Of a DNA stretch of 64,000 bases, positions 289 to 63,936 are shown piece by piece. Made by a program: the position numbers and the translations under genes. Each line of letters begins with the position of its first letter. The first letter of the stretch is position 1. Under the pieces are notes generated by a model that was not told the origin of the DNA, made no database searches, and was given only the letters and a program-made list of their open reading frames with translations. Source of the DNA: Phallusia mammillata (lineage: Eukaryota); assembly GCA_965637545.1 (NCBI GenBank), contig OZ281495.1, positions 2,728,001 through 2,792,000 on the forward strand, written 5' to 3'.

Positions 289-518
289 GTAAATTAATCG
301 GTCAATACATATAAATTTATTATAATAAGAAGTAACCCCGAGTAGAAGCAGATTTCCTTGCCCGAGACGCTTTGGAACTGGTAGTCAAAACAATTAAGTT
401 GAGAGATAATGTGACAATGTGATCTGTTATATTTCTTGGCGGTTCAGAAGTTACACAGTAACATAAAAAAATCTAAAGGTATTAAGTCGTTTTGTCATAT
501 CACCCATCTATATTTCAG

Positions 519-8247: not shown

Positions 8248-8774
8248 CACAAAGTTGAAATTACTAGTGACTTATATACAGGCTCTATGTAACATACAAG
8301 CAAACACTGACATAAGTAACAACATTGTTTTTGTTTTATTTAAAATAATGCTGGTAATCACAGATGTTAATGTAATTGTTAAAGTACATTAAAATTCATG
8401 ACAAACACTAAAAACTTGTGTAGTAATAAAAAGGTGAAATGAAAATGACATGTTGAAACAATGGTATACATAAAAACAACAACAACAAAATTTGGTTATA
8501 TGTGTAAGAATTGGTGGAGGATGTGCACACAAAAAATGGCATATCAGACGCTTATGACAAATTGAGTAAATCACCTGCATTTGTAGTTTACTAAACATTG
8601 TGTGATGTACTAAGCTGGGCAACATACAGGGATATGCATAAAAATGGGTATTCCAAATAAAACATGTGATATAAAGCAACTGTACAAAAGTTCTACAATC
8701 CATACAAAGGACTTTCCATGTCAAAACACTTTCTCTAAAGAAAATTTCTTTTGCTTCTCTTTTTTCCTGTGTTT

Positions 8775-8974
8775 NNNNNNNNNNNNNNNNNNNNNNNNNN
8801 NNNNNNNNNNNNNNNNNNNNNNNNNNNNNNNNNNNNNNNNNNNNNNNNNNNNNNNNNNNNNNNNNNNNNNNNNNNNNNNNNNNNNNNNNNNNNNNNNNNN
8901 NNNNNNNNNNNNNNNNNNNNNNNNNNNNNNNNNNNNNNNNNNNNNNNNNNNNNNNNNNNNNNNNNNNNNNNNNN
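8775..8974. other. Scaffold gap (200 N)
   Basis: Run of exactly 200 N. Confidence 1.
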
Positions 8975-10017: not shown

Positions 10018-10778
10018 TCACTTGGTCAACTTCGCTTTGCTGTTTTGCAATTTCCTTTCACTTATTGCAATCAATTTTTCTCGTTGTTCCTCAGTTATAT
10101 CCTCCGCTGTTTTGTAAACTTCGATCGCTTTTGTGTAACATTCGATTGCTTCTTTGATTCGTGAAGTTGTCTCACAAACAGCACCAAGATTGTTCAACAA
10201 GTGACCGTAGATGTAATACTTTGAACTTTCATTCCCGAACTTTGTTTCCATAAGTTCAAGTCCAAGTTTTATTGTTGTTTCACTCGATGCAAAATCACCG
10301 ATGTGATGTTGACTCACTTCAATGTGATGCAAACACCGAACCTCCTTTTTACATCGAATTTTTTCATTTATTTGAAGGTCACGGATTTGCTGAACCATGT
10401 CACGCATCAGTGGGATCACGTGATCGCGCACGATTTCTATGTTTCTCGACTCCGAAGATGAATCGGAATTTTTCATCAAATGTTCGATTGTTTTTCGAAT
10501 TTCCATCGCACAACCCACTACACTTTTCGCTACAGCGGAGTCGGGATTTTTGTTTGCATAGAAATCTGCGGCAACGCTAAACAACAAAATGGCTTCCAAA
10601 TATTCGCCGTCATCTCTAAATTTTGTGGCTTTTTCTTTCAGGTTTTCTGCAGTGACCCCTGGTTGACCAGTGATTGACCTTGAAAGTTGTTGTTTTGTCG
10701 TTTTTGCTTCGTCATATTTTTTTGTTTTTAATAAATCAACATAATTATCAATACGTTGATTGAATTCGTCAGTTTGAT
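10018..10778 (-). CDS. Unit 1 terminal exon, TPR-like helical domain
   Basis: Acceptor ttctctgcag|AT, phase 1; 59 open codons upstream of the ORF-track start; TPR motif YGHLLNNLGAVC...EAIECYTKAIEV. Confidence 0.88.
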
Positions 10779-13700: not shown

Positions 13701-16700
13701 TTAGCCAGTTGTTTTGTTATTTGTAGGATGTGGATTAACTGCAAAGGACCGACTTGTATGATGAATATAAAAGTGAGTTTGCAAAGGTGGCTTTCTGTTT
13801 GAGAAGAAAGTGTTTTGACACGTGCATTTTTCTGGTATGTATGTTCATTTAACCTAGTTGTTCTGTGATACATATCTAGGATAACGGTAATTGGTGATTC
13901 TGTTCATTTTTTAGATTTATTGGAGATTATTTCCAAATATTACAGTCTATACAGCTCCAAATTGAAACACAAATATTATCAATTAATTCTAGGATAATAA
14001 AGTACAAAATGCAAGCCAGTTCTAAAGAGTGTCCCTTGTCATTGTAAAAATATTCAGTCACAATCTTCCAACTTTACTTTTTAATAAAAAACTGAAACTG
14101 TAATTTGTTTTATTTTAAACACAGGAAAAAAGAGAAGCAAAAGAAATTTTCTTTAGAGAAAGTGTTTTGACATGGAAAGTCCTTTGTATGGATTGTAGAA
14201 CTTTTGTACAGTTGCTTTATATCACATGTTTTATTTGGAATACCCATTTTTATGCATATCCCTGTATGTTGCCCAGCTTAGTACATCACACAATGTTTAG
14301 TAAACTACAAATGCAGGTGATTTACTCAATTTGTCATAAGCGTCTGATATGCCATTTTTTGTGTGCACATCCTCCACCAATTCTTACACATATAACCAAA
14401 TTTTGTTGTTGTTGTTTTTATGTATACCATTGTTTCAACATGTCATTTTCATTTCACCTTTTTATTACTACACAAGTTTTTAGTGTTTGTCATGAATTTT
14501 AATGTACTTTAACAATTACATTAACATCTGTGATTACCAGCATTATTTTAAATAAAACAAAAACAATGTTGTTACTTATGTCAGTGTTTGCTTGTATGTT
14601 ACATAGAGCCTGTATATAAGTCACTAGTAATTTCAACTTTGTGTGTCACCTTTACAAAATCCCATAACCATTCACCATGGCTGTCATGTTTTGATTTTTA
14701 TGTTGAATCTGTCCACATGTTTGCATATCTTTAACTTTATCACTTCTTTTTTAGCACAACCCAAACCATTACACTTTATATATGGTTGACCCTTGGTTCA
14801 AAGCTTGAAGCACGAATCACAACTGATTTCATTTCAGTTGTGTATTTTTGCAAGTAGACAACCAAGTACCAACTAAAGATAAAGAGTAATGTTTGGGTTT
14901 GGTCCCAAAAGAAGTGTTTAAGTTAAAGATATGCAAACATGTGGACAGATTCAACATAAAAATCAAAACATGACAGCCATGGTGAATGGTTATGGGATTG
15001 TTTGAAGGTGACATAAACATAGTCGGCTTGGATTTAGCCACTGAAACCAAATTGGCTTAAAACCATCCGGCTAGAAACGGGTCGTGGAAAAACCATCCGG
15101 CTAGAAACGGGTCGTGAAATGCTGTGCTGGTGATTATCGATGATGTGAGTGGAAGATTTTTAAAACCTGTTTTTTTCTTAGCCACTAGAGGTCGATGCAA
15201 AAGCCCATAAATAAAAAAAGAGGGGAAGGTAAACTTTGGGTGGCCTTTAAATGTCTGTCAAATTCTGGTGGGTAATAAGACATGCTTTTGATTTCCGCGG
15301 TTTGTTGGGACGATAGGTAGCGGAAACAGTTAAATGGTTCATATACTAGCGTGGCGAGTTTTCTGTGTGGTGGGAAGTTTTTAAACCTTATGGCCAATTT
15401 TCTAATGTTGCCATGGTAATCACATCTCGAGAATTTTTAAGTAGCTACAAACAAACCTAAAACCACAATTTAATTGAACATAATGTGTCAAAACATCCGC
15501 TGTCTGTGGTTTCACCTAGGTTGAATTGTGTACCATAAGTCAAATTAACTTACAAGATTGAAATTCTTTGTCCAGATAGTATTAAATTATTTCTAAAGTA
15601 ATAACTAACACCAACGATTTTGTGACAAACTGCCCTTTTACTATGTGAAATATTTTGAGGTGTTGGTTGTCGCTACACAAATATTGCCTTTCCAGCAAAC
15701 TGGCAGCGGACGCTTGTGGCTTACATTTCATTGCCAACCTTAGAAAAAGAACGTTTTTGCTCGTCTTGACATGTGGAATCATCGACTTCTTGAGGGAAAA
15801 AGTGGGGTCCCCAATTATAACGGTTTAAGGCTTAAATAGGGGTAACATGATTAAAACTCAATTTCTATTCGACCTCTGTGATAAACGAGTTATTGTGGAA
15901 TACAAATTGCTCGCGAACAAAAAAGTTCCGCACCCTGGCATTATTTAACAGAAGTTAAAGGTTCAATGCAAAAATTTATAACAAACGTTACCGGCATAAC
16001 TACGCAATGTAACGGTTCAATGTATCTCATACCTGGTTGTTGCTGGTTGCTGGAGGTGGGGATTTCCCCTTGTTGGATAGAAGTTTGTTCTGCTTCATTG
16101 GCGCCCTCTGTTGGTTCGGTTGATCGTTCCTCGGTGTTGTTTAAAGTGGAAGGCACTAAAATATAAGTGGTTTCACAAATAGACTTTAATTTATCCTACA
16201 GTCGTGTTTAGTTATTTTATCAACGTGACAAAGACACAGAAACGTTTTGTTACAAACTGTCCAGTTACCCAGTGTAATTATGGCCACATAACTATTTGTG
16301 AGCTTAATTTATTGGCTACTTTTTAACGACTTGAATTTGTTTTCACAAAATGATTTGCAGCTTAGCAATGTGTGATATGACGTAATATTTTGCCAAACTG
16401 TTGAAATACGATTTTTAACTATAGGCTGAATACGAAAACAACTTTATATTACTATGTCAGATGCAAAAACCGGGATTTTTATTGCAGAACTGGTTGAGGC
16501 TTAAGTATGAAAACGAAAAATCGTGATTTGAGAAGTCAAGCGCTAAATGTCAACACACGATTTGCAATCATTTTGTGCATAATGTGATTAGTTTACCTGT
16601 TGGTGGTTGTGGTGATTTTCTGTTCAAACGTGAGATAAACTTTCGTACCGTCGTAAACAGTCCTTTGGAACCACGTCTGGTGGGATCTGAACAAAATCAA

Positions 16701-19700: not shown

Positions 19701-22700
19701 TAGGGCACGACTTTATCTGTGATTGGTTTACCTGTAGGTTGCTGTGGTGATGAGCTGCTGGAAGTAGGACGGTTTTCTGTAGGTAACCTTCCAATGTGTT
19801 TTCCTTATGTTACCTTTTCAGCGCTACATATTTATTTATTTCTCTCAATTGCAGATTTTCACGTAATATTGTCTTATTTGATTTATTTCACTGTTCGTTC
19901 TAGTTGCGTGCTTTGTTTCGCATTACCTCGCTGGATTTTTCGCATAAATAGTTGTCGCTCTCGGATGTGCCCAGTAACCTTCATAAATTGTTTTGGCCTA
20001 TGATTGGTCAACCTCCGGTCGGCAGACAGCAGTGTTTTGAGGGACGTTTAGTAAAAGGTCGATTTGCTATATCGATTTGACTTTACGTCGTGGTTATTTT
20101 TTATATATAGAGTATATTTAACTTGATACAATGTTTATTAGCCTATGGAAAAGTTAGGAAGAATCGCAGGGCTTCGTTTACAGAATTGGAAGGGGGCATA
20201 GAATATATTAGATTAGCAGGTTCTTTAAAGCGTTTTTGGTCCAGGTAACATGTGCATCTCATATCCTGGTACTTCTAACACAATGGACCAGAAAAACTTT
20301 TTTAGAAAAGTAATCACTATCACCTGTTTGAATGTTCGCGATTTACTTCATTTATTATTTTTTGGATATCTGGACTCTTTGTGGAATAATATGAACCAAC
20401 TGAACTTCACAAGTTCAGCGGTAAGCCCGTCAAATATCGAAACAAGCACTGTTGCCTGCAAGTCCAAGAAAGACTCTGTCGTGGGTTCGAGTCCCATCAG
20501 AGCCCTTGCCATTTGGAATGATCGGCTGGTTTGGTATACCGCGTTTAAAAGACTGATCCTAGTGATTTAGTTATAACTACGCCGTTATCACTGATCTGAA
20601 TAAACGCTTGAGGGTTGATCCCAGTTACGAAATTACGTGCATCCTAACTGCTTAGCTGTCAGGTTGTTGCTTAACTAAAGCTAAGTTTATTGATGTTACG
20701 AGAAATAACTTTAAACCGGCTCAGGCATAATCGCGGTCGTTCACACACATTTGCGTTAGTCAGGTCATAAGCTTCAAAACAAGCACACAAGTCCCAATTA
20801 TTTGATTCTACGTGTCCATAATTGGTTACCTGCAGGTTGCTGTGGTGATATGCTGTTGAAACGGGCGATCAACTTTTGTACGGACGGGTTGAATTTTTCG
20901 TCATCGTTTCTAATGGCGTCTGAACAAACAAATGGGTGAAATGTGTTTTTTTTCTCACTGCCTATAAGTATTCTTGGTAACAATACGTTTATCAATAACT
21001 AGAAGTTCCTACGAGCCAACGTATCTCATACCCGATTGCTGTGCATTGCTGCTAGTTGGAGTTTCTTCTTGTTCATAAGAAGGCAATTGTTTGTTTTTCT
21101 GTGAGGTGCCGGCTGATGCTAATGACAATAAATCATTGTTGGTTAAGTATTGGTGCTATTGTGTTACCTACAATGATTTTTGTTTTCGCCTATACATATT
21201 TTAATAAATATATAACTTATTTTCGGACCTATTTCCTCGTAAAGTTATACGAGTTGCCGCTAAACCAATATTGACTTTCCACCATACTGGCAACGCATGT
21301 TTGCTGTCGTTTAAGGCAGTGATTTTCAAAGTTTAACACAAATGGCAGAAATAGCTTTTCTTTCATAAAAGTAATTCTCCGCTATCACCACTTTGAATGT
21401 TTCTTCGTGATTTACATCATTTATTTTTGTGTAACAAACAGATTCGTCGTGAAATATTAAAAATATAATTGCGTGGGTCCGTTATCAATTGGTTGAGTGT
21501 GACATTGATTTTAATATGCGCCAAGTGTTCCGCGACTTAAAGTAGGTAAAACAAAAACTGGTAAATTTATAATGATTTTCTAAATTATCGGAATTTCCAT
21601 TATCGTTTTGTCCACCCCATACCTAGTTGCTGCGGTTTCCTGGATGTAGGAGTTTCCCCTTGTTGAGAAGAAGATGGTGACCGTACCACTTGTGCTTCAT
21701 ATATCGGTTTAATTGTCTTTTTTATGGCCGCACTTGTTGTAGAGGGGCCTGAAAGTTGATTGCTTATAGATATCTTTATTTAGTGAAGACATTTGCCTTG
21801 CTTTCCGAGAGAAATAAAACCAAGATTTATTTGAAACATCGTCTGTGCACCGAGTGAAATTGTTTGACGTTCGGTTGCCAAAAGACGAATATTGACTTTA
21901 CAACAAACTGGCAGAGGGCTGTTACGGCTTTATATTGACCTTTTTTAAATCTCAAAAGTTTTAAAAAACGATCGAACAAACAGCAATGTTACGACAAATA
22001 AAACAAAGTTTAATCAATGAAAAATAGTTTTGATTGATCAGATCGGAAATGGAAGACCTGCGGACATTTAGCTCTAAAAGTGCGCTCTGTATAGTTTTGC
22101 CGTTGTAAGAACCAAACCTTGGGATTACATTACACAAAATTGTTAGTGCGGCCTCGCGAGTAGTCAGGTGGCTTCATAAACTGAGCATCTCACCCTAGTT
22201 CTAGTACGGGGATGCTGAAGGTTTTATACGAAAAAACAATTGACATTGTTAAATCCTACTATTTTTTTTTTACTCTGGGAGGATTTTTTACCTTGCTGAG
22301 AAGAAGGCAACTCTTGTACGCCCTCCGCTGTTTCGCTTAACCGTCCTTCGGTTCCACCCGATGTGAAGGGCACTGAAATATAGATGGGTGATATGACAAA
22401 ACGACTTAATACCTTTAGATTTTTTTATGTTACTGTGTAACTTCTGAACCGCCAAGAAATATAACAGATCACATTGTCACATTATCTCTCAACTTAATTG
22501 TTTTGACTACCAGTTCCAAAGCGTCTCGGGCAAGGAAATCTGCTTCTACTCGGGGTTACTTCTTATTATAATAAATTTATATGTATTGACCGATTAATTT
22601 ACCGTGAAAACTTCCGGACCGGGGTGAAAAATGGTGAAGAGGGACGCGTCGACTTTCGCTGACTTGCGGTTGCTCGTCTAAATCCATTTGAGTCAGAGTT

Positions 22701-25138
22701 GTCAAAACTTGAGAAAGTAGCTTGGTAGTTTGTTGCTTATCCAAACGCGTTTTCAATTCTTCTTTTATTTCAGTCATTGTAGGACGTTTTGTTGGATCTT
22801 GATCCCAGCATCGCTTCATCAGTAGTTGGAGTTGCTCTGCGATTTCTTTGTCTTCACCGACCAAAGTTTGTATCCAATCCTGTATTTCCTGGCAGTCTGG
22901 TCTTTTTCCTTTCTTGATTTCCTCTAATAACTCTCTTCGCTCTTCCTGAGTCAGACGTGGATACGGAGCTTTACGATTTAGTGCCCAGTGGATGATCATT
23001 GAAAATGCGTAAACATCATGTTGCTTCCTAGGCTTCATGCTGAGGTCCTTCAGTTTTTCAGGAGCTGTGTAATAGGGAGTGAATTGAGGCCTTTCTTTCT
23101 TGGTTCGTGCCAAAGGATTCACATTTGCCGAAATACTGTAAGTTGCCAGTTCGGCCCCGCCAAAATCGATTATTTTGCAATGGAGCTCTTTAGAAAACAT
23201 AACATTTTCGGGTTTTAAGTCCTGATGAATTAAACGTTTATCAGGTAAATTGTGACAGAAAGCCATTGCTGATGCTACTTCGTATAAAATACGAACACGC
23301 AAAGCAAGGCCCAGTTCTTTTGATGTATCCTGTAGTAGCTCTTTGAGATTCCCGCCTTTGTAATATGCCATCACAATTCCTATTGCGAAAGTCCATTTGA
23401 CATAGCCAAAAACCCGAACGACATTTTCATGATCTGCTTTCTGCAAGTGTTCCATTTCTTCTTTGATTCTAAAAAGAGAGTTTTTTTTTCAGCTGCATGT
23501 TACGTTTTGTGCATGTAATAACGCAAAGCAAAGATCTCGGTAGGACAGGTGAGGTGGTATGTCCCCTCAACAAAATGATTGAAAACAATTTATCAAACGT
23601 CACACAACCCGCATTCCTCGCTTTTTAATCTTCGGTTTTTAGCAATGATTAAAAATGTCGCATCTCGCACCACACATCAGGAAATCAAGCAGGCCAACCA
23701 AGATTAGTAGTCACGATGGCTGGCGCGCTTTGCTGGTTAATTCATCTAAGATTGCGCAGTAGTTTGTCATTATCGTGTAGTCCATGGAATTAATGCCGCT
23801 GGACGAAGCTTTTGAGGTATAACTAGTTTTGTAAGTCCACACATATACCAGATACACCAGCACAATATATAAAATTAGCAAATGTTTTCAAAATTGCCAT
23901 TTTTTAAAATTTAATTTCGATTTGTTACCTCATTATCATATTTTACAAATTGTTGTGAAGTCATCAACACAAAATTAATCTTAAATAGTACGTTTCTTCC
24001 ATATTTGCGATAGATTTGCACCGCTCTATATAACAAATCGTATAACTTACGTTTTTTCAAGCCGCGCCTTTTCTTGGGTTCCACCAGATACTTCAAACAC
24101 TTTGATGGCAACTTCTTGCTTTAACCCATTGTGGTATCCGAATATAACATCCCCGAAGCCTCCTGAACCGGCCACGAATTTGTCAAGGTTACATGTGATG
24201 TCACCACAATCCAATTCCCGTAACTGTGACACAGAAAGATTATGTTTTTACCCCTGATGTCCAACGTATATTTCATTGAGGTCCAACCAAGCCATACAAC
24301 TAACTTAACCAATGTTATTCAAAACTTTGTTCAACCGGTTTGCAAACGAAAAGTTTTTGATTCAAATCCCGTTGGGCTTTAGTAATTGCTGAGTAATTTA
24401 AAACCCAGTTTTTTACATTGCAAGATTTGTTTTTGAAACAAATTCTCTGCTACAAATTTAGGTTTATCAGACAAGTCAGAGCGAGTTGAGTAAAACATAG
24501 TTATCGACTAGTTTCAGAGTGTTAAAATGGTTTATATAGAAAAAGAAAGCGGATTATGTCAGTAAGTCCTCCTAAACTTAACTCTTAGCTAAACATTATC
24601 AGTCACTAGAAAGCACAAAAGGGCCTTAGAGCTACTAACACAGGACCTTACATCACAGGCCTACTAATTTCCAGTAAAGTGCGCACTCAAAAATAATTCC
24701 GGCAGAGAGCGCACTCAAAAATCTTAAATGCACTTTGTAAAAAAAATGCTGACGGTTAGGGCTATGGGGGTTGGTCTGAGGTTTCACAATAACACTGAAA
24801 TCAGCCCAAAAACCCAGTTTATGTTAAATTCATTCATTTAACCCTACCCCAGACGCAATTGTAATTTGAATAACTGCGCTCTTTTCACCATCGATCGGTA
24901 TTTAAGAAACTTTTTGTGGTGTGAGTTTCTGTGTTAGTAGATCCTCCCAAAATAGGAAGGAACGAAAATACTTTAGGATTAAAAGAAAAATTTAAAACAA
25001 ATTTATTTGAATCCCGGTAGTCTAATTTGAAACTATACTTTTTCATACGGTGGACAAATAAAACCTGTTTAGTGTAATGAACAAACAAACAAAAGAAAAA
25101 AATTTGTAGAAGTTGCTTACCTCTTTCGGCGAAGTCAT
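10018..25138 (-). CDS. Unit 1 gene model: RIPK-like kinase - linker repeats - SH3 - linker repeats - TPR-like domain (~955 aa, 15 exons)
   Basis: Exons 25121-25138, 24051-24223, 22603-23468, 22292-22372, 21623-21748, 21032-21118, 20830-20919, 19732-19776, 18566-18669, 18032-18181, 17594-17624, 16816-16938, 16597-16686, 16033-16155, 10018-10778 sum to 2868 nt = 956 codons in one open frame with compatible phases. Confidence 0.72.
11958..12260. repeat. CCCGAA/GGCCCG-rich interspersed repeat (MITE-like)
   Basis: Clustered cccgaa/ggcccg motifs at 11970-12040 and 12190-12255. Confidence 0.35.
12337..15120. mobile_element. Decayed DNA-transposon-like material in the last intron of unit 1
   Basis: Starts near CACTAGAAAAAA; AGCC/GGCT-rich repeats at 12350-12720 and 15030-15120 (30-bp tandem pair); exon-like fragment NFCTVALYHMFYLEYP at 14199-14246. 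Far end not found. Confidence 0.3.
13270..13661. mobile_element. MULE-like MITE with ~120-bp TIRs and 8-bp TSD
   Basis: TIRs GGGTGACACTAAAACGCTGAATGGGCGGGA...; aaattttt duplicated at 13262-13269 and 13662-13669. Confidence 0.8.
16033..16155 (-). CDS. Unit 1 type-A linker exon (VPSTLNNTEERSTEP...QQP)
   Basis: tttag|TG ... G|gtatga, 123 nt, phase 1-1. Confidence 0.8.
16597..16686 (-). CDS. Unit 1 type-B linker exon (DPTRRGSKGLFTTVRKFISRLNRKSPQPPT)
   Basis: ttcag|AT ... G|gtaaac, 90 nt, phase 1-1. Confidence 0.8.
16816..16938 (-). CDS. Unit 1 type-A linker exon (VPSTSGDTEERSTEP...PQQL)
   Basis: tttag|TG ... G|gtataa, 123 nt, phase 1-1. Confidence 0.8.
17594..17624 (-). CDS. Unit 1 31-nt micro-exon (ILEIKEVKNT), phase 0 to 1
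   Basis: acccag|ATA ... ACA G|gtaagt; restores phase after the SH3 exon. Confidence 0.55.
18032..18181 (-). CDS. SH3 domain, second exon (EEEGWARGRCNGKEGVFPTNY...)
   Basis: acacag|GAG; SH3 core GW..G...G.FP.NY; ends AAG|gcaagt (GC donor) or 4 nt later at a GT. Confidence 0.85.
18566..18669 (-). CDS. SH3 domain, first exon (DVEVLRRMEVTYSYEPGNADELQLKVGDIIDVYND)
   Basis: gtcag|AT ... GAT|gtgggt; SH3 RT-loop motif Y.Y.P.N.DEL.L..GD.I. Confidence 0.88.
19368..19710. mobile_element. Truncated copy of a CCGAATATTCGG-type MITE (fuller copy at 57547-58006; mirror 3181-3523)
   Basis: Aligns by eye to 57547-57690 and 57880-57925. Confidence 0.65.
19732..19776 (-). CDS. Unit 1 short linker exon (ENRPTSSSSSPQQPT)
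   Basis: cctacag|AA ... G|gtaaac, 45 nt, phase 1-1; 3' half matches type-B exons. Confidence 0.6.
20830..20919 (-). CDS. Unit 1 type-B linker exon (DAIRNDDEKFNPSVQKLIARFNSISPQQPA)
   Basis: gttcag|AC ... G|gtaacc, 90 nt, phase 1-1. Confidence 0.82.
21032..21118 (-). CDS. Unit 1 A-related linker exon (ASAGTSQKNKQLPSYEQEETPTSSNAQQS)
   Basis: cattag|CA ... G|gtatga, 87 nt, phase 1-1. Confidence 0.65.
21623..21748 (-). CDS. Unit 1 A-related linker exon (GPSTTSAAIKK...SRKPQQL)
   Basis: tttcag|GC ... G|gtatgg, 126 nt, phase 1-1. Confidence 0.7.
22292..22372 (-). CDS. Unit 1 shortened type-A linker exon (VPFTSGGTEGRLSE...SQQ)
   Basis: tttcag|TG ... G|gtaaaa, 81 nt; the paralogous downstream donor is lost (gattta). 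Confidence 0.65.
22603..23468 (-). CDS. Unit 1 main kinase exon, RIPK-like TKL kinase
   Basis: EEMEHL (alphaC), IHQDLKPEN, IIDFG, YTAPE, DVYAFS, LMKRCW..DP.KRP; ttttag|A phase 2, G|gtaaat phase 1. Confidence 0.93.
24051..24223 (-). CDS. Unit 1 kinase N-lobe exon
   Basis: cacag|TTA; GSGGFG and VAIK; AC|gtaagt; 173 nt, as in units 2 and 4. Confidence 0.92.
25121..25138 (-). CDS. Unit 1 start exon (MTSPKE)
   Basis: ATG ACT TCG CCG AAA GAG|gtaagc, phase 0 fits the next exon; paralog MTSANE at 46657-46674. Confidence 0.7.
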
Positions 25139-38610: not shown

Positions 38611-39365
38611 TTACTTGTTCAACTTTGCCTTGCATATTTGCAAACCCCTCTTAATTTTTGCAATCTCTTCTCCTCGTTGTTCCTCAGTTAAATCCTCCGC
38701 TGTTTTGTAGGCTTCGATTGCTTTTGTGAAATATTCGATTGCTTCTTTGAATTGTGAAGTGTTACCGCAAACAACACCAAGATTGCTCAACAAGTAACCG
38801 TAGATTGAATACTTTAAACTTTCATTCCCAAACTTTGTTTCCATAAGTTCAAGTCCTAGTTTTATTGTTGTTTCCCTCGATGCCAAATCCCCGATGTAAT
38901 ATTGACTCAGTTCAATGGAATGCAAACACCAAACCTCCATTTCACTTCGAATTTTTCCGTTTATTTGAAGGCAACGGATTTGCTGAGTCATGTCACGCAT
39001 TAGTGAGATCACGTGATCGCGCACGATGTCTTTGTTTCTCGTCTTTAAAGATGAATCAGAATTTTTCATCAAAAGTTTGATTGTGTCGCGAATTCCCTCT
39101 GCACATATCGCTACACTTTTCGCTACTGCAAAGCCGGGATTTTTCTTAACATGGAAATCTGCGGCAATGCTGAAAAATAGAATTGCTTGCAAATATTTGC
39201 TGTCATTTTTAAATTTTGTGGCTTTTTTTTCCAGGTTTTCTGCAGTGACCCCTGGTTGACCTGTGATTGACCTTGAAAGTCGTTGTTTTGTTGTTTTTGC
39301 TTTGTCATACTTTTCTGTTTTTAATAAATCAATATAGTTTTGAATGCGTTGGTTGAATTCGCCGT
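38611..39365 (-). CDS. Unit 2 terminal TPR-like exon
   Basis: ttttgcag|AC, phase 1; 57 open codons upstream of the ORF-track start. Confidence 0.88.
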
Positions 39366-42300
39366 CTGCAAAAAAGTAAATATTTTTTCCTTTAGTTCCA
39401 AAAAATAAGAAATAAATAATAAATTTGTAGACGTTTTTCGCCTACTAAACTTGAGCTGCGACCACACGTTCCACTGCTTTATGTTTTTGTGATGCAAATA
39501 AATAAAAAAGGAAACTTAGAGGTTTTATCTTATGCAATATATGACAAAGACAAGATAAATTCCACGCAGTGTACATCACGCACCAGGGGCATTAATGGCG
39601 TCAATTCATATTTTAGGATTTCCACGAAGTTTGTTACCGCGATTCGCTTTAATTAATGATTTGATTGACAGTGGAAAAGATGTTGCCATCGGCTTTATTT
39701 CGAAGGGCAATGTTTTAGTAAAATTTATTGTGCTTATTTATAGAAATGCCCTTGTTTTTGATCTGATTCCTTATTTTGTACCGAAATAACAATCAGATTC
39801 CTGCTTAAAGTAAAAGTAAACCTAGACCGGAGCTGTCGTAACTCGTAAGATACTCGTATTTTCTACGAACAAAGAGTTGCTTAAATGGATTATTTCTGGT
39901 AACATATATGGCATGTAATATGTCATGGCTCATAGCAGTGTAAAGATTGTTTAAAACGTTGGCTTCATTTTGTCTAAAATTTAATTTTTCGGGTGTCCTT
40001 ATTTTGGGATCCATGTCAATGGCAACCCTGGTTAAGGTAAAAACATCGTTAAATTAGTGTTTGCAAGATCGAGCGTTTGGGTCGTGACTGATACGATCTG
40101 AGGAAATAGTAAATTGACAATTGACCGTTTATAATGCCGAAAACGTTTTTTTTACTCGTTAGTCGGTGGTTATAACATAACTGTTAACAGGATGAGTTCG
40201 AACAAGTCATTGCAGTCATACCAGATAGCTGCTTCTGGGAATTACCATTTGTTAAAATTAAGTTTGTACTGCCTCATGTGCGCCCTTTGTTGGATTGTTG
40301 GATTGTTTTTTCACGGAATAAACTGGCAAAGACACAAAAATCTCAAAAAAGATTTTTTTACAACAATTTAATTGGTAGTTAAGAGTAGATATTAGTATCG
40401 ACGTCAACAAACATGTGGAATTACATTAAGATCCCCACAGCAAATTAGTTACAATTATTAAATTAATTGACAGTTGGCAATGTGTTGCAATATGTGATTG
40501 ACAACAAACTAATCAACTATTTCGTTGCTTGAACCATAATAATTGCAAAACTGGTTGGCTGTTAAGCACGGACAAAAAATACGGACAACAAAAAACGTTA
40601 TGTTTGCAGCTTTTGGATGCCAGCACACAAGATCAAACATTTTTACCTACAGGTTGCTTTGGTGATGTTTTGCCAAAACGGGGGAATATTTTTTTCAAGA
40701 ATGTTGTCGAGCGTTTCTTGGAATTTTGGCTGATAGGATATACAAAAAAAAAATTTAAACGATAAATATTTCTTTGACGACATATAGACAGTATTTCTGT
40801 TGCTGATTGTACTTTTTTCTTTTGTTTTGAAAAGGTGCATTTGCCACTCTTAGCAACTGCTTGTTGGTTTACCTGCAGGTTGCTGTGGTGATGTGCTGCT
40901 GGAATGAGCGATTTCCTCTTGTGGTACAGTGGGGCGTTTCTCATCACCGTGTCCAACTGGATCTGAAGAACATCAATTAAGAATAAAATAATAGTTTAAA
41001 ATAATCACTTATCCAATGCAAACAAATCGTTTGTCACCGAATATTCAGCTATTGTCAATTAAATAAGATTACTAAAAGTTAATAAGATTACTAGTGCTGG
41101 ATTGTTGCGTATAAATTTTTATGTTTTCTTATTATTTTTCACGCTATGTCATTATGAACTTAGCTTGTGTAACGTCAAGTGCACAATTACACGATACACC
41201 CCAAAGTGTTTAACTTTCGTACTGACGTCGAGGAGCGTCTTGCAGCAACGTGACTGGTGGAATCTAATCAATTAAAATTTGCACAAAACGTTTGTTTGAA
41301 AATGTTCAGCAACACAAACAGATAGAAGTGTCACACATGTAACTGTTGGCAATATCTGTTGAACGAAATTCAATTCAATATATCTCATACCCTCCCTCTT
41401 TTGTCTGCTGGATGGAGACACCTTGTCTTGATAGGAAGGAGATTGTACTTGCTCTCGTGTGCCTTTTGTCGGTCTAGATGATTGTCCATCGGTGTCACCT
41501 GATGTGGAGGGAACTAAAAAATATTAAAGACTTTTCTACCACAGAACATAATAAAAAATCCCCACACAACAATTGGCAACATCTTATTCATCAACTTTAT
41601 TAGGATAAAATAAGTTTCCGCGAGACAAACTATCTCCAACTTGGGTAAAGTATTCTGTTTCTCGCGGAAGTTACCGCTATTGTGTGTTTAATATTTTACC
41701 ATGAAAACTTCTGGACTTGGTTGAAAAATAATGAAGAAAAACGCGTCGACCTTCGATAACTTGCGGTTGCTCGTCCAAATCCATTTGAGTCAAAGTTGTC
41801 AAAACTTGAGAAAGTAGCTTGGTTTTCTGTTTGTCTAAATACTTTTTTAATTCTTTTTTTATTTTATTCATTGTGGGACGTTTTGTGGGATCTTGATCCC
41901 AGCATCGCTTCATCAGTAGTTGGAGTTGCTCTGCGATTTCTCTGTCTTCACCGACCAAAGTTTGCATCCAATCCTGTATTTCTCGACAGTCTGGTCTTTT
42001 TTCTCTCTTAATTAATTCCAATAACCCCCTTCGCTCTTCTTCTGCCAGACGTGGATAAGGTGCTTTACGAGCCAAGACCCAATACAATAACATACTGAAT
42101 GCATACACGTCATGCTGCTTCCTTGGTTTCATGGTGGGATCCTTCAATTTTTCCGGAGCGGTGTAGTAGGGAGTATATTGTGGTCTTTCTTTCTTGGTTC
42201 GTGCCAAAGGATTCACAGTTGCCGAAATACTATATGTTGCCAGTTCGGCGGAACCAAAATCAGCCAATCTACAGCTTAGTTCTTTGGTAAGCAAAACGTT

Positions 42301-45300
42301 TCCAGGTTTTAGGTCCTGGTGAATTAAACGTTTGTCTGACAAGTTGTGACAGAAAGTCAATGCTGATGCTATTTCGTATAAAATGCGAAGGCGCACAGCA
42401 AGGTCCAGTTCTATGGATGTATCCATTAGTAGTGTTTCTAAATCTCCACCTTTGCAGTATTCCATCACAATTCCCATTGAGAAAGACCATTGAACGTAGC
42501 CGAAAATCTTAACGACATTTTCATGATCTGCTTTCAGCAAGTGTTCCATTTCTTCCTCTATCCTAAAGAATATTTCAATCAATTTTGCTAAGGTGGTTTT
42601 GTATGTGACAAATCTTACATTTTCACAGCGAGTGATTTTTTCTTTTTTCCACCAGCTACCTCAAATACTTTGATGGCAACTTCCTTCTTTAACCCATTGT
42701 GGTATCCAAATAGAACATCCCCGAAACCTCCTGAACCGGCCACAAAGTCATCAAGGTTGCACGTGATGTCACTACAGTCCAATTCCCGTAACTGTACAGA
42801 AGAGATGAGAATATACAAATGGTAGCACTCACATGAGACAAAGTTTGGTAAAAAAATAGGTATAAAACGCAAAGAGCACTAATACCTCTTTCAAAAGAAA
42901 TTTCTGTGAAACGGTTTAGGCCAGTGGTTCTTAACCGGGATTCGGCGTTGCCGAACCCCTGGGGTTCGATCGAACGTATTTTTGAAGTGCAATACAAATA
43001 CTCGTTTTTGACTTTAGTGTATCAAAACCCTGGAAGGTTAAACTTAGGCAGGGCTGTTTTAAACATCTCGAAACAGTTTTTGTGGCACTAAAAAGAGTAT
43101 TACCAGCCTAATAACTATATGTATCAGACGTTTTGTACGCCTATTGTGTGCCAACAATGCGAACAAAACAGGTACCACAAGCATCACAATATAGATTATG
43201 ACATAATAAACACTTAAGTGATCTCCTCGCTGTGCAGCCAATCTGTGTACCGAGCTAGAAATTAATTTGGGCTTTTTGGGCGCTATTAGATGGTAAATAC
43301 ATAATATCAACAAAACAAAAATAAGCAGGCGGTCGTTGGTGAAATAAGAATCTGCGATGCAGGTGCACCCCTGCACTAAGGTTTTAATTTCTTTTTTGAC
43401 GTAACAAAGAGCATTGTTCGCGTTGTTCCTAAGCAGAAACACAACGAAATTTTGTTGACAGCAAAAACTTATTTCTTCATCTTTTTCATGTTTGTGTACA
43501 GATGCTAAAGATACAATGCTTTATTTTGGTAAAGCAAAAAATTGCCGGTATTAAAGCACTTATGAAACAAGTGGCTTGTATTACTGTATTATGTCAGAAT
43601 TGAACAAAATGACAAACAGTAACTGTTGCCATTACGATTGAACAAAAACTAATTATGACCCACCAAAGAAAATGGGGCAAAAACCTGGGATGTAACTTTG
43701 GGGTTCGACCAAAGGCTGAAGAATATCGTAAGGGTTCGGCCGTTATAAAAAGGTTAAGAACCACTGGTTTAGGCTATTTGGCAAAGGCGACTCGTGCTTA
43801 AAATTGTTGGGGGTGCTGCTCCCAGTTTTAAAAAAAAAAATAATACACGCTTGAACTTGCAGCTACTTTGTGACGTGTTTTCGTCACGCCTTAATGCACA
43901 TGAGTGTAAACAACAGACCGTATCATTTGTGTATTTTGTTTACTTGCACGGCGACAAACCAAACACAATAATTTGGGCATTAACAATTTTCTTCTTGATT
44001 TCAAAATTATAATTAAAACAATATTTTCTGATGCAAACAGTGCCAGTGCATCATTTTTCAAAGTTTACAGGTAATTTTGTGCCTTTGAAGTAAGTAGGGA
44101 AATGCATAAGAAATTTTATGTATGATTGTTATCTCGATATAGCAGGGCTTCTCAAATGGCGGACCCCGGTCCATATCCGGACCTTTGAGGCGTTTGACGG
44201 TCATTTGGTTACGGCAACATATAGACAATTATTTGTGTGTTAATTACTTGATCATTGCTATTTAGCGATAGTTTTTAAACTGAGGTTCGCATAGCATTTG
44301 ATCGAGGGACTTTGAGGAGTCTAATACTATGTTTCCATGTCGCGTTTTGGCTTAGCCCAAACTGTTATGTCCATGTTTTGAATTTAGCGCCAAAAACGAG
44401 TCGTGTTTCCATGTCGCTAACGCAGTCAAGCGTAACGTGGTACAGCGATCTGTTGCCTGCCTCGCGGGATTCGAAACTAAAACGAAATATGGTAAACAGG
44501 CTTTGGAATGTAATAAAAACAACAAACTGTGCTGCCTACAAATTAACTTCTTCATCGTAAGCTGACTTGAGTGAATTAGGATTTGAAAAAACTACGAAAA
44601 TTAGCTTCTACAGATAGAGAGTTGATACTGCTGTTATCTAAAATGAGCAGGTCTATTACTAAGAAACTAGTTTGATGTATTAGAGTTTTTGGAGATAAAC
44701 AAAGTAATAGGAAGTTTTAAAGTAAGAACAACCTTTATCAAAGAAGGACCAGATGCACTGTGCTTGGTAAGACTTGCTTATTTTGTGTTAGTAATCATTT
44801 TTTAATGACTTATTTCAACCTTGCACAGTTATGTGTTATTGGTGTTTAAACATTTATGTGTGCTTCTACACATTCTTTTCTTGTTTAATAAAGGCAACAA
44901 TCTAACTGTTGTTTCTTTACACTTAACAGAAAACAGTTATTTACTAAATTAATTTTTGCTTTTAGGCTTGACAACCAAGAACTACTCAATCACTTGCAAG
45001 AACTCAAGCTGTTTTTCCAGCAAACCAGTTAATGATTCTCTCTATGTATGCGAATGAAGTGATTGTGTTAATACTGTGACTCTATTTTGTCTGTTTTCAA
45101 TTTGCAATACAAAAATTTGAACAATTTTTAAACTACCATTGGTGATTTTATTACACAGTCAATGCACAGAAATGATAGAATATAATTAAAACGCTAAAAA
45201 CAGTTTTCAATAAAGTAGTCACCAATAATTGATGCACCAGAACAAGAAAAATAGACAGAAGATGTACATATCACAATTTACAAAATTCATATCACCACAA

Positions 45301-51319: not shown

Positions 51320-52104
51320 TCACTGTTTTTGCAGCAAATTTGTAATTTTGTCCAACTTTGCTTTGTTGGATTTTAAATACCTTTCACCTTTTTCAATTCT
51401 TTCTTCTTTATCTTCCTCGGTTAAATCTCTCACTGATCTATAAACTTCGATTGCTTTTGTGTAATTTGCGTCTGCTTCTTCGAGTCGTGAAGTTTCCTCG
51501 CAAACAAAACCAAGATAGTTCAACAAGGTACCATAGATTCGATACTTCGAACATTCATTGCCAAATTTTGTTTCCATAAGTTCAAGTCCACGTTTTATTG
51601 TTGTTTCGCTCGATGTCCAATCCCTGATGTAATATTGACTCCAGGCAATACAACCCAAACAGCGAACCTCCCATTCGCATCGAATTTTTTGGTTAATTAG
51701 AAGATCGCTTATTTGCCGAGTCATGTCGTGCATCAGTGGAATCACGTGATTGCGCACAATTTTTTTGTTTTTTGACTTAAAAGTTGAATCAGATTTTTCC
51801 ATCAGAAGTTCTATTGTATCTCGAATTTCAAATGCACGGACAGTTACACTTCTCGCTACAGTAAGGTGAGGATTTTTCTTCGCATAGAAATCTGCGGCAA
51901 TGCGAAAAAACAAAATGGCTTTCAAATATTTGCCGTCATATCGAAGTTTTTTAGCTTTTCTGATTAAGTTATCCGCGGTGAGCCCTGGTAGTCCTTCGAT
52001 TGATTTTAAAAGTTGTTTTTTAATCTTTTCTGCTTTTCCAGCGTTTCCAGATATTAATAACTCAAAATAACTGTGTATGCGTTGGTTGAAGTCGACATTT
52101 CCAT
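51320..52104 (-). CDS. Unit 3 terminal TPR-like exon (most divergent copy)
   Basis: tttctcag|AT, phase 1; open for 261 codons to the stop. Confidence 0.85.
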
Positions 52105-52249: not shown

Positions 52250-52339
52250 CTGTGGGTTGCTGTGGAGATGTGCTACTGAAACTGGCAATTAGTTTTAATG
52301 ATGCGATGGAGCGTACCTCGTCATCGTGTTCGATTGGAT
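52250..52339 (-). CDS. Unit 3 type-B linker exon
   Basis: tttag|AT ... G|gtaaac, 90 nt. Confidence 0.75.
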
Positions 52340-58430: not shown

Positions 58431-59191
58431 TCACTTGTTCAACTTTGCTTTGGTTTCTTGCAAACCAACCTCACTTGTCGCAATATATTCTCCTCGCTGT
58501 TCCTCAGTTAAATCCTCCGCTGTTTTGTAAACTTCGATTGCTTTTGTGTAATATTCGATTGCTTCGTTTAATCGTAAAGTTTTCTCAAAAGCATCACCAA
58601 GATTGTTCAACAAAGAGCCGTAGATAGAATACTTTGAACTTTCATCCCCGAACTTTGTTTCCATAAATTCAAGTCCAAGTTTTATAGTTGTTTCCCTCGA
58701 TGATAAATCCCCGATGTAATATTGACTCAGTTCAATGTTATGCAAACACCGAACCTCACAATAACATCGAATTTTTTCGTTTATTTGAAGGTCGCGGATT
58801 TGCTGAGTCATTTTACGCATCAGTGGGATCACGTGAACACGCACAATTTCTGTGTTTCTCGGCTTCGAAGATGAATCAGAAGTTTTCATCAAAAGTTTGA
58901 TTGTTTCTCGAATTTCCAGCGCACACACAACTACACTTTTCGCTACAGTAAAGTCGGAAAATTTCTTCACATAGAAATCTGCGGCAATACTAAAAACCAA
59001 AATGGTTTCCAAATATTGGCCTTTATTTCTAAATTTCGTGGCTTTTTCTTCCAGATTTTCTGCAGTGGCTCCCGGTTGACCTGTGATTGACCATAAAAGT
59101 TGTTGTTTTGTCGTTTTTGCATCGTCGAGTTTTTTTGTTTTTAATAAATCAACATAATTTTGAATGCGTTGATTGAATTCGTCGGTTTGGT
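58431..59191 (-). CDS. Unit 4 terminal TPR-like exon
   Basis: tccctgcag|AC, phase 1; 59 open codons upstream of the ORF-track start. Confidence 0.88.
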
Positions 59192-62100
59192 CTGCAGGGA
59201 AATAAAAAAAGATGTTTTTATTTTAGTTTCAAGAAATAAAAAACAAAAAAAAAAAACTGATCGTAATTTGACACCGGTTCATGTAAAGCCATTTTATAGT
59301 AATAAATGTGTTTTAGTGTTAAATACCAAAAAATTTTAAATTTAACTTTTAAATAACCCTGACATAATAACAAGGTTTTGACGACATAATGCTAAATATT
59401 TGGTTTTTTGCAGTGTGACATTTTGTCTCCAATTTAGTAAAAAAGTTAAAACAAAATTATTTTTTGTACGAAATCAGCTTGTCAGTTTTGTCTCCCACTA
59501 GAGCCAGAGCTATTGACATGTTTGTCACATTCTAAGATACAAACAGGAATTTTGTTGTTTTAAAAGCAGGCCTAGTATCAGGAATAATACGAATATATTA
59601 TTTCCCAATGATAAAATTCTAACGTGGTGTAAGTTTAAAACAATTTATGGATCAAAATACCCTATAGTTACTTTGGAAAATAGTTGCATTTAGGCAAAAT
59701 TAGTGGTTTAATTTTTGGATAATTTAAGATAAGATATAAACAGACGTAGGCTAAATCACACTTTTGGGCGTAACATCTCTTCTCCAATATGTTAACAATT
59801 TTGCTTTAACCCACTCATTGATATCACGTAGGCCCGTCTTTAATCAATAATTTTTAAGAACGCTCTGACAAAATTTCGAATTTCGTTGGAAACATTTTTG
59901 CTGTTTCACGCCCGCTGCACCTAAAAGTTCCACTGCTTCATGTTTTGTGACGAAAATAAATAAAAACAAATTTATGACGTCAAACTCATATTATAGGATT
60001 CACGAAGTTTATTACGACAATTTCGATTTAATTTTTGATTGACAGCAAAAAAGGTGCTGCAATCGGCATCATTAACAACGGTAAGGTTTAAACAAAGTTA
60101 AATTAGTGTTTGCAAGATCTAAAGTTTCTGTCGTGACTGATACGATCTAAAAAAATGGTAAATTGACAATTGACCGTTTACAAATTCGGAAACGCTTTTT
60201 TACTCGTTAAAACATAACCGTTAACAGGATAAGCTCCCATACCAGATAGCTGCTTCTGAGAATTACCATTCGTTGAAATTAGGTTTCTACTGCCTTATGT
60301 CTCTCTGTAGGTTTGTTTGATTGTTTAGTTAGTTTTCCCGGGATAAATTGGCAAAGACACAAAAATGACTTTTTTTACAACGACAATTTAATTGGTAGTT
60401 AAGTGTCAAAAGAGTAGATATTAGTATCGACGTCAACAAACATGTGGAATTACATTAAGATCCTCACAGCAAATTAGTTACAATTAATCAATTAAGCTTA
60501 ATTGACAGTTGGCAATGTGTTGCAATACGTGATTGACAACAAACTAATTTACTATTTCGTTGCTAGAACCATAATAATTTCAAAACTGGTTGGCTGTTAA
60601 GTTCGGAAAAAAATACGGACAACAAAAAACGTTATATTTGCAGCTTTTGGATGCCAGTAGGCTACACAAGATCAAATCCACTTTACCTACAGGTTGCTTT
60701 GGTGATGTTTTGCCAAAACGGGGGAATATCTTTTGTAAGAATGTTGTCGAGCGTTTCTTGGAATTTTGTCTGATAGGATCTACAGAAAAATAGAATTTTA
60801 AACGATAAATATTTCTTTGACGACATATAGACAATATTTCTGTTGGTGATTGTACTTTTTTCTTTTGTTTTGAAAAGGTGCATTTGCAACTCTTAGCAAC
60901 TGTTTGTTGGTTTACCTGCAGGTTGCTGTGGTGACGTGCTGCTGGAATGAGCGAATTCCTCACGTGGTGGCATTAGTCTTTTCTCGTCACCGTCTCTAAA
61001 CGGATCTAAAAAACATAGATTAAGAATAAAATAGTATTTTAGAAAAATCATTCATCCAATGCAAACAAATCGTTAAAATTATGATGACCCTTGTGCGCCC
61101 CTTGTTGGTGCATCAGAACGTTCCTTATTGTCATCTGAAGTGGATGGAACTAAAAATCTCACATTCACCATTATGGTACGCAATAAAAAATGTGTACTTA
61201 TGAAACCAGATTGAAGAAAAACATATTTTGCACGCCGTGGGGTAGACCTGGCACACACAAACTCTACAGTTGATTTTCCTTATTTGAGTCCATTGACTCG
61301 GTGTTTAGAACTAGATAAATATTAATTTTCCATTAAACTGGTTGTGGCTTGTTGCAAATAAATTTTCATTGACGGCTTTACAAACATCCATGTTCGGGCT
61401 ATTGTAGAAACTATGACTTTGTTGTTGGTTTACCTGCAGGTTCCTGTGGTGATGTGCTGCTGGAATGAGCGATTTCCTCTCGTGGTGCAATGGGCATTTT
61501 CTCATCATCGTGTATGATAGGATCTAAAGATTATAAATTCGAACAAGATGATTTTCAAAAAAAATGTTTGCAAATACGTTTGTCACAGAGTAATCAAATG
61601 TAATAAATTCAATCAACATGTTTAATTATCTCTAAGTTCCCGAGTTAATGCATCTCATACCAGGTTCCTGTGGTTTGCTGGTGGTGGGAATTTCTTCTTG
61701 TTGAGAAAAACGGGATTGTGATTGCTTTGGTGCGCCCCCCGCTGGTTTGATAGAACGTTTCTTTGCGTCATCGGAAGTGGATGGCTCTAAAAACATGTTT
61801 TACAAATATACACTATTTAATTTATGTTGCAAGATTAGTTTGTGTTTTCCTTTCTGATTATGTTTTGTTTTTCCTAAATAATTCCCAACAACTGTCAAGT
61901 TATCATTTAAAAACTTTCCGTTAAAAGTTAAAACGTTCAGGTGAAACTGTGTCAGTTGCCAGTGATTCTTAACCTTTTCTGTTCTCGAAATGGTTGTGCT
62001 TTATACCAACCATTAACTAGCGCAATAAAACGTGTCATTATCAAAACAGATTAAAGGTTCTGGACCCACGAAAACATATTTTCTTTCTTTTGAGTCCATT

Positions 62101-63936
62101 GCCCCGTGGTTTAGAACTAGTAAAATTTATTTTTTATCAAACTGGTGCTGGATTGTTGCTTGTAAATGGTTATTTCTTCCTATTCTTTTTCACGTCTTAT
62201 CATATACTTAGCTTTTGTAACGTCAAGTGCACGAAAATCAAAACACGGACCAATTTGTGCAAAGTGTGAATTTGTGATGGTTATACCTCCAGATTGCTGT
62301 GCTGATATGCTGTTGAAACGAGCAATTAACTTTTGTACTGGTGTAGTGGAGCTTTCCGCGGTACCGTGACTAGTGGGATCTAAATCAATTAAAAATTTAC
62401 ACAAAACGTTTGTTTGATATTGCTCTACACTCAAAACAGCTAAAAAGTGTCATAAATGTAACTGTTGACATTATCAGTTGAGCGAAATTCCATTCAATAG
62501 ATCTTGTACCCTTCTGCTGTTTTCTGCTGGATGTAGAAGCTTTGCCTTGTTGGGAAGAAGATTGCACTTGCTCTAGTGCCCCCTCTGTCGGTCCCGATGG
62601 TTGTCTATCGGTGTCAACTGATGTGGAAGGAACTAAAAATAAGAAAGATTTTACTACCACAGTTAAAATTGCCACACAAGAAATGGCAACATCTTAACCA
62701 ACAACATTATTAGGATAAAATAAGTTTCTACGAGACAAATTATCTCCAACCTGGGTAATGTATTCTGTTATGGGTGGGAGTTATCGTTTGTTAAAATAAT
62801 TTTCTATTGTTCTATTACTATTTTACCATGAAAACTTCCGGACCAGGTTGAAAAATAGTGAAGAGGAACGCGTCGACCTTCGATGACTTGCGGTTGCTCG
62901 TCCAAATTCATTTGAGTCAAAGTCGTCAAAACTTGAGAAAGTAGCTTGGTGGTTTGTTGCTTATCCAAACGCGTTTTCAATTCTTTTTTTATTTCAGTCA
63001 TTGTGGGACGTTTTGTGGGATCTTGATCCCAGCATCGCTTCATCAGTAGTTGGAGTTGCTCTGCGATTTCTTTGTCTTCACCGACCAAAGTTTGCATCCA
63101 ATCCCGTATTTGTTGGCAGTTTGGTCTTTTTCCTCTCTTAATTTCCTCTAACAACTCTCTTCGCTCTTCTTCTGCCAGACGTGGATACGGGGCTTTACAA
63201 GCAAGAACCCAGTATAATATCATAGCAAATGCGTAAACGTCATGTTCCTTGTTAGGTTTTGTGAGAAGATCCTTTAGTTTTTCAGGAGCGGTGTAGTAGG
63301 GAGTGTATTGAGGCTTTTCTTTCTTGGTTCGTGCCAAAGGATTCCTAGTTGCCGAAATACTATAAGTTGCCAGTTCGGCGCTTCCAAAATCAGCCAATTT
63401 ACAGCTTAGTGCTTTAGTGAGCAAAATATTTCCAGGTTTTAAGTCCTGATGAATTAAACGTTTATCGGGCAAATTATGACAGAAAGCCATTGCTGATGCT
63501 ATTTCGTATAAAATACGAACGCGTACGGCAATGCCCAGTTCTTTGGATGTATCGATTAGTAGTGTTTCTAAATTTCCCCCCTTGCAGTATTCCATCACAA
63601 TTCCCATTGCAAAAGACCATTGGACGTAGCCAAAAATTCGAACGACATTTTCATGATCTGCTTTCAGCAAGTGTTCCATTTCTTCTTTAATTCTGAAGAA
63701 CATATTTTGAATAAAGTGCCTGTGGCGATTTTATTGTGTTGTGTAGGAATTCTTATAACTTACGTTTTTGTGGCTTGTGTCTTTTCCTGGGCTCCACCAG
63801 CCAACTTAAATACTTTGATGGCAACTTGTTGCTTTAACCCATTGTGGTATCCAAATATAACATCCCCGAAACCTCCTGAACCGGCCATGAAATCGTCAAG
63901 GTTACAAGTGATGTCACCACAGTCCAATTCCCTTAA
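58431..63936 (-). CDS. Unit 4 gene model: RIPK-like kinase - A-B-A-B'-B'-C - TPR-like domain (start exon outside window)
   Basis: Exons 63764-63936, 62827-63692, 62510-62632, 62287-62379, 61661-61786, 61434-61523, 60916-61005, 60687-60779, 58431-59191 sum to 2415 nt = 805 codons. Confidence 0.78.
61079..61149 (-). other. Half type-A exon ending in a stop codon
   Basis: tttag|TT CCA TCC ACT...GGG TCA TCA TAA; acceptor intact, donor half deleted. Confidence 0.65.
62827..63692 (-). CDS. Unit 4 main kinase exon
   Basis: IHQDLKPGN, LADFG, YTAPE; ttcag|A, G|gtaaaa. Confidence 0.93.
63764..63936 (-). CDS. Unit 4 kinase N-lobe exon
   Basis: gcgcag|TTA; GSGGFG, VAIK; AC|gtaagt; 71-nt intron follows. 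Confidence 0.92.

Follow-up and report, generated by a model that had tools for sequence, protein, structure and literature searches.

Four TTG-initiated open reading frames as the very probable 3'-terminal phase-1 exons of tandem kinase-linker-tail genes in an ascidian

The closest described counterparts of the kinases discussed here are the RIPKs. In these proteins the N-terminal kinase precedes a disordered region, and the C terminus bears a module for protein interaction, which is a death domain, a CARD, ankyrin repeats or a RHIM. The same order of parts recurs in the DNA analyzed here, a 64,000-nt stretch (the window) with 30-40% G+C and retroelement remnants, where coding blocks for kinases and for helical tails are arrayed in tandem on the minus strand; its closest database proteins are those of the ascidian Phallusia mammillata. 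In a phmmer search of PDB, the kinase exon matches RIPK1 (E=1.6e-28), RIPK4 (3.8e-22), RIPK2 (8.9e-21) and then RIPK3; this likeness is one of kinase-domain sequence alone, and the kinases are treated as RIPK-like and not as orthologues. In place of the RIPK modules, the C-terminal module here is a TPR-like helical domain of ~250 residues. It shares with the TPR domains of kinesin light chain, LGN/Pins and NASP a solenoid of helical repeats, but the identity to these is just 13-18% and profiles recognize one repeat only. A literature search returned no paper on an ascidian kinase family of this RIPK-like kind, with phase-1 linker modules and a TPR-like tail.

Here we examine four minus-strand ORFs of the window (10018-10599, 38611-39192, 51320-51925 and 58431-59012; 193-201 codons each, with TTG as the first codon), which the initial annotation took to be terminal exons and not stand-alone genes. 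In our judgment they are very probably the 3'-terminal phase-1 coding exons of tandem kinase-linker-tail genes. For three of them (genes A, B and D) this is borne out by coding evolution, fold, the lack of a start codon, RNA contigs (gene B) and the database proteins P0154 and P0006, while the fourth (unit C), which lacks a kinase, conforms only in part. Each minus-strand tandem gene would begin with a RIPK-like kinase encoded by a small N-lobe exon and one large exon, continue with a disordered linker assembled from mini-exons of 84-123 nt with phase 1 at both ends, and end in a TPR-like helical tail of ~250 residues, all of it encoded by one last exon. The listed ORFs would then be the 3' three quarters of this last exon, with the TTG as an internal leucine codon, and the true exon start would lie 57-59 codons higher, at a phase-1 acceptor where AT or AC completes an Asp codon. 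We infer the junction partners in A, C and D (named earlier as 16033-10778, 52250-52104 and 60687-59191), and the transcription of the kinase-less unit C. The putative tail exons are as follows, with tblastn matches referring to the Phallusia protein P0154, described below.

10018..10778, minus strand: gene A 3'-terminal tail exon, 253 codons plus stop; acceptor ctctgcag-AT; P0154 tblastn match starts at 10779
38611..39365, minus strand: gene B 3'-terminal tail exon; acceptor ttttgcag-AC; RNA-like contig depth over 38554-39365
51320..52104, minus strand: unit C 3'-terminal tail exon, 261 codons plus stop; acceptor tttctcag-AT
58431..59191, minus strand: gene D 3'-terminal tail exon; acceptor ccctgcag-AC; P0154 match starts at 59192

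The TTG "starts" are an artefact of an ORF caller that works with the bacterial code and its set of start codons. Above the TTG the reading frame had been described as open for 57-59 codons; that is the extent of the conserved stretch, and the frame is actually free of stops for longer (70, 83, 77 and 70 codons in the four ORFs, in order). Likeness among the paralogues starts at an AG lying 59, 57, 59 and 59 codons plus 2 bases above the TTG, and the open stretch beyond this AG is simply translated pyrimidine tract. As previously noted, all four copies have a pyrimidine-rich AG acceptor at this point, in the contexts ttatttttttgtttctctgcag-AT (10778), atatttacttttttgcag-AC (39365), ctctcatttttctcag-AT (52104) and tctttttttatttccctgcag-AC (59191). 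The chance of 59 stop-free codons is ~0.014 (arithmetic at 36% G+C), a value that may not be raised to the fourth power, since the tail exons are paralogues and hence not four independent trials. A canonical acceptor coincides with the onset of coding-type conservation in four of four copies.

The tail exons have lengths of 761, 755, 785 and 761 nt, each 2 modulo 3, and the acceptors are therefore phase 1. The kinase donors (22603, 41700, 62827) and linker donors (including 16033, 40873, 52250 and 60687) that were checked are all G-gt and phase 1, which upholds the earlier statement that acceptors and donors match. An Asp codon spans the junction, its G being the last base of the preceding exon and its AT or AC the first two bases of the tail exon, and the translations from the AG onward are alike (D-QTDEFNQRIDNYVDLL, D-GEFNQRIQNYIDLL, D-GNVDFNQRIHSYFELL and D-QTDEFNQRIQNYVDLL). 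The most divergent copy is that of unit C, 59-61% identical to the other three. An AATAAA or ATTAAA follows the stop codon after 76 nt in A (AATAAA at 9942), 146 nt in B and 315 nt in D.

The extension above the TTG (57-59 codons) has a pairwise dN/dS (Nei-Gojobori) of 0.37-0.54, compared with 0.52-0.77 for the rest of the exon; being no higher, it indicates that the extension evolves as coding sequence. Twenty homologues, found in Phallusia, Ciona and Styela, can be aligned across the extension. The AlphaFold2 model derived from the homologue alignment (pLDDT 96.6, pTM 0.92) shows a single domain of 11 helices, of which helices 1-3 (residues 2-17, 21-35 and 43-55) fall within the extension. 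The TTG encodes the Leu of a Y-L-E/Q/K-A/T-I-L motif, residue 60, near the start of helix 4 (residues 59-74), and the corresponding column is hydrophobic (L/M/F/V/I) in 24 aligned homologues, so that its initial description as a leucine inside a conserved helix is correct. As modelled, the complete domain fold would need the sequence upstream of the TTG. The best Foldseek matches of the tail are the TPR domains of KLC1, LGN and sNASP (probability 1.0, TM 0.45-0.6); the TM of ~0.5-0.6 denotes a common solenoid architecture and not a specific family. Pfam TPR_1 is recognized in gene A only (29.4 bits against a cut-off of 27.8, residues 194-221, the last repeat), while TPR_12 falls marginally below its cut-off. 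The tail fold is thus predicted to be a generic TPR-like solenoid.

The earliest in-frame ATG lies 90-100 codons into the tail exon, and consequently no start codon could yield the whole domain. Ascidians add a spliced leader by trans-splicing, which is established knowledge and lends some plausibility to a different reading, in which the tail exons are at least partly separate units, their AGs act as trans-splice acceptors, and a tail-only mRNA gives a product of ~150-160 residues from the internal ATG. We regard this as very improbable. In such a product the compact domain would be without its first four helices and most of the fifth, and the constraint upstream of the internal ATG is equal to or stronger than that on the rest. 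A literature search for spliced-leader data in Phallusia returned no relevant paper.

The exons preceding the tails in the kinase-linker-tail reading were located by tblastn with the exon peptides of one unit, and their borders were read from the sequence. The predicted exons of genes A, B and D are as follows.

24051..24223, minus strand: gene A N-lobe exon (GSGGFGDV, VAIK); tblastn and sequence borders
22603..23468, minus strand: gene A main kinase exon, 866 nt; Pfam Pkinase E=6.7e-35; phase-2 acceptor, phase-1 donor CACG-gtaaat
16033..16155, minus strand: gene A last linker exon, 123 nt, phase 1-1; donor CCAG-gtatga; predicted partner of acceptor 10778
42619..42791, minus strand: gene B N-lobe exon (GSGGFGDV and VAIK); RNA-like contigs
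41700..42562, minus strand: gene B main kinase exon, 863 nt; donor CATG-gtaaaa; Pfam Pkinase E=1.2e-36
41391..41513, minus strand: gene B linker exon, 123 nt, phase 1-1; acceptor tttttag-TTCCC at 41513
40873..40962, minus strand: gene B linker exon, 90 nt, phase 1-1; donor GCAG-gtaaac at 40873
63764..63936, minus strand: gene D N-lobe exon (GSGGFGDV, VAIK); sequence borders
62827..63692, minus strand: gene D main kinase exon; Pfam Pkinase; boundaries ag/gt
62510-62632, 62287-62379, 61434-61523 and 60916-61005, minus strand: gene D linker exons; boundaries ag/gt
60687..60779, minus strand: gene D last candidate linker exon, 93 nt, phase 1-1; donor GTAG-gtaaag; use uncertain

The intron between the N-lobe and main kinase exons is 56 nt in B and longer in A (24050-23469) and D (63763-63693), and the main kinase exons of all three genes end CAY G-gtaaa. 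The linker exons (84-123 nt, all multiples of three, phase 1 at both ends) start with ag-AT or ag-TK (TT in B and D, TG in A) and end with G-gt. Because all donors are G-GT and phase 1, any kinase or linker donor could join the tail in frame. Conceptual splices using only ag/gt borders give single open frames of 2226 nt in A, 2004 nt in B (42791..38611) and 2289 nt in D, and in gene D the kinase spliced straight to the tail is likewise open. No start-codon exon was found among the exons traced in A, B and D. For the first linker exon of gene B, an acceptor at 41499 had been considered and was replaced by 41513 given the RNA joint at 41511; both are phase 1.

Modules resembling the first linker exon (..SQQGE(I/T)PT(S/T)..Q(Q/E)P) also occur at 21627-21746 and 61662-61781 on the minus strand and match residues 73-111 of P0154. 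Judging from sequence, A and D probably have further linker mini-exons beyond those modelled. The gene B counterpart of the last candidate linker exon of gene D (60687-60779) lies at 40651-40737, where the acceptor AG is now AT (gtatat-CC) and RNA depth is absent; it is a recently silenced mini-exon. The use of the gene D exon is uncertain for the same reason, since its counterpart lacks both the AG and RNA depth.

RNA evidence was obtained for gene B (38400-43000) from contigs of four runs guessed to be RNA, at a likeness of at least 85%. Contig depth lies on the predicted exons (38554-39365, 40864-41017 and 41480-42865); it is zero at 39478-39631, 40402-40863 and 41018-41325, and essentially zero from 40094. 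Because the depth is limited to exons, the runs are read as RNA and not DNA. The degenerate mini-exon at 40651-40737 has no depth, in agreement with 40873 as the last donor. The 56-nt intron 42563-42618 (GT..AG, minus strand) is removed in four of four runs, with a shorter side of 123-168 letters. A joint 41511>41719 with 21 replaced letters (X3, X6) is collinear with the kinase-to-linker-1 splice 41700/41513 in a paralogue, and a joint 40905>41700 (X8) links the linker exon 40873-40962 to the exact predicted kinase donor.

Joints between the tail and linker exons are found at 39361>40871 (predicted 39365/40873), 39361>41479 and 39211>41490, each in a single contig and in X3 only; their shorter sides are 25-37 letters, they are 2-4 bases off the prediction, and the intervening sequence is undefined. 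Given the 85% likeness threshold, these joints may come from paralogues. They suggest that tail-exon sequence may be contiguous with linker-exon sequence in RNA of the family, at a resolution that is not base-exact for the gene B copy. Junction reads between 40873 and 39365 had been named as the check on gene B, and this part of the earlier proposal finds partial support: the joint 39361>40871 is near, but it comes from one contig, is 2-4 bases off and possibly derives from a paralogue. Joining of tail with linker exons in RNA contigs also speaks against tail exons as separate trans-spliced units, as does the lack of a leader-like end at 39365 among the loose ends listed; depth on the tail exon is much greater than on the kinase exon, as separate units would have it, though contig depth cannot rank the parts of a gene.

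RNA-like contigs from four of four runs also cover 39786-40093, within the last intron of gene B, with joints that skip ~145-151 nt (39824-39836 > 39976-39984). Rfam gave no match in the whole window, including 39786-40093, and this segment is probably a dispersed repeat expressed elsewhere.

Among database proteins, the layout of genes A, B and D is matched by P0154 (Phallusia mammillata, 515 aa, UniRef A0A6F9DJG.., "uncharacterized protein LOC108950821"), which was obtained only through a region search seeded with P0152. In one frame, P0154 contains a kinase end (MKRCWDQDPTKRPTMTEIKEELK..), linker modules (VPST.. and ..SPQQPA) and a tail (DDFNQLVQKYVDLLKTKKYDEAKTTKQQLS..) that runs to the stop. 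Its kinase end shares an identical run of 22-23 residues with the kinase exon ends of A and D, and one of 15 with that of B. Placed on the window by tblastn, its residues 1-70 end immediately before the kinase donors, residues 72-111 match the gene A linker at 16156-16034, ending at the donor 16034/16033, and residues 257-513 start at 10779, 59192 and 52105, which are the tail acceptors. The identity is 65-70% to the tails of A, B and D, 55% to the tail of C and 56-66% to the kinase ends; at 65-70% and 55% on the tails, P0154 is a paralogue and not a product of these genes. A more distant paralogue, P0006 (Phallusia, 359 aa), starts in kinase subdomain XI and continues with a linker and then the tail. 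The succession of kinase end, linker and tail is thus common to these two proteins and the window genes; the proteins differ in being products of paralogues, or of another individual or species, and in being N-terminally incomplete, with starts at an internal kinase Met. This truncation at internal Mets suggests that P0154 and P0006 derive from mRNA.

An exhaustive search with the tail peptide gave 763 hits. Among the best 150 representative hits to the tail, none has a kinase save P0006, and a Pfam scan of ten long tail hits detected no kinase. Kinase-bearing hits being so few, the database gives little full-length support for the fusion of kinase and tail. A word search with the tail peptide, whose length window is blind to full-length kin, returned two 153-aa Phallusia fragments (P0001 and P0002) and one metagenome protein, and a word search with P0006 returned only P0006 itself. 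Many homologues in Ciona and Styela consist of the tail alone (230-430 aa) or differ in their N-terminal parts.

Tail-only proteins of this kind could be taken as evidence for separate tail units, since P0001 and P0002 start at exactly the internal Met from which a trans-spliced tail mRNA would be translated, and Ciona has the tail-only homologues P0010 and P0012. However, P0001 and P0002 resemble ORF calls on 5'-incomplete transcripts, and most likely reflect frame calling on such incomplete transcripts, while the Ciona tail-only homologues carry their own Met-started N-terminal extension, which is absent here. The 153-aa fragments lend indirect support to the expectation that automated annotation would split kinase-linker-tail genes, as does P0004 (Ciona intestinalis XP_026692798.1, 1277 aa), with its four tail-matching stretches. 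P0004 is a RefSeq model, and its four stretches matching the tail domain make it look like an automated merge of tandem paralogues.

The fourth tail belongs to unit C, for which the following further exons are predicted.

52250..52339, minus strand: unit C last linker exon; donor ACAG-gtaaac; 145-nt intron to 52104
53450-53533 and 54913-55005, minus strand: further unit C linker exons; intact, phase 1-1

The conceptual splice of the unit C linkers and tail is open and in phase. A kinase exon above the tail is absent by tblastn and by inspection of the sequence, and a 15-codon N-lobe remnant at 55521-55565 is followed by a stop. On sequence grounds, the unit C tail appears to fit the description "terminal exon", but not "of a kinase gene". 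Nothing in the window matches the front of the receptor-like protein P0152, so unit C does not belong to that receptor type of gene.

This raises the question whether some of the four tails, with unit C as the main candidate, are dead pseudogene exons of a decaying tandem array that lie outside functional transcripts, which we consider unlikely, though less so than the other alternatives discussed here. The missing kinase exon and stopped N-lobe remnant of unit C are what decay would leave, as is a 120-nt tail fragment with an in-frame stop at 37082-37204; unit C has no AATAAA or ATTAAA within 400 nt after its stop codon, and dN/dS values of 0.5-0.8 amount to just mild constraint. On the other hand, dN/dS is below 1 for every pair, and all four exons retain 250-261 open codons and intact splice sites at an inter-copy dS of 0.2-0.9. 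The linker exons of unit C are also intact and in phase, which speaks against a dead relic.

The tail-exon relic itself (37082-37204, minus strand, 120 nt) lies 1.4 kb downstream of gene B. It corresponds to domain residues ~114-154 and is 61% identical to P0154.

The same tail module is found at the end of two further Phallusia mammillata proteins, P0005 and P0152, with 64-68% identity to the tails of A, B and D and 55-57% to that of C. Homology to the tail begins at exon residue 2-4. In contrast to the window genes, these proteins have at the front an extracellular part rich in Cys, a transmembrane helix and a short piece in the cytoplasm, and no kinase, showing that the tail exon has been combined with unrelated front ends and so behaves as a shuffled cassette. 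The phase-1 exon logic explains how the same tail comes to stand on different front ends. An extension of this logic is that the phase-1 tail exon is a freely shuffled cassette, ending RIPK-like kinases, the kinase-less unit C and the membrane receptor-like P0005 and P0152, and that neighboring units are cross-spliced or exon-skipped into a combinatorial kinase-tail repertoire. Because all linker exons are phase 1-1, cross-splicing or exon skipping is possible in principle. We hold this scheme to be improbable, somewhat more so than decay of unit C; if true, the combinatorial kinase-tail repertoire would be a diversified innate-immune sensor system, a candidate behavior only.

Recognizing an ORF as part of a terminal exon is routine annotation. 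For annotation of the array, the loci should be modelled as kinase-linker-tail genes of ~670-760 or more codons, and not as kinase genes with separate 190-residue genes beside them. At least three helices of the tail domain are lost from any model that begins at the TTG or the internal Met. The analysis also fixes the exon logic of a large, undescribed ascidian RIPK-like family, consisting of a phase-1 tail cassette and phase 1-1 linkers.

In the surroundings of gene A, positions 1-8774 repeat 14117-22890 in inverted orientation at 99.989% identity and adjoin a 200-N gap (8775-8974). The segment 14117-22890 holds part of the gene A kinase exon, all gene A linker exons and SH3 exons, and the 8.8-kb inverted copy may be a true palindrome or may have arisen by fold-back during assembly. 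The tail exon of gene A sits in the 5.1-kb loop, where it is connected without a gap to the right arm alone. Between the genes, remnants of retroelements are found at 34786-35256 (plus strand) and 49784-50725 (minus strand); they comprise a piece of reverse transcriptase (RVT_1, E=9e-16) and an ORF carrying a GIY-YIG motif (E=6e-5), and are possibly Penelope-like.
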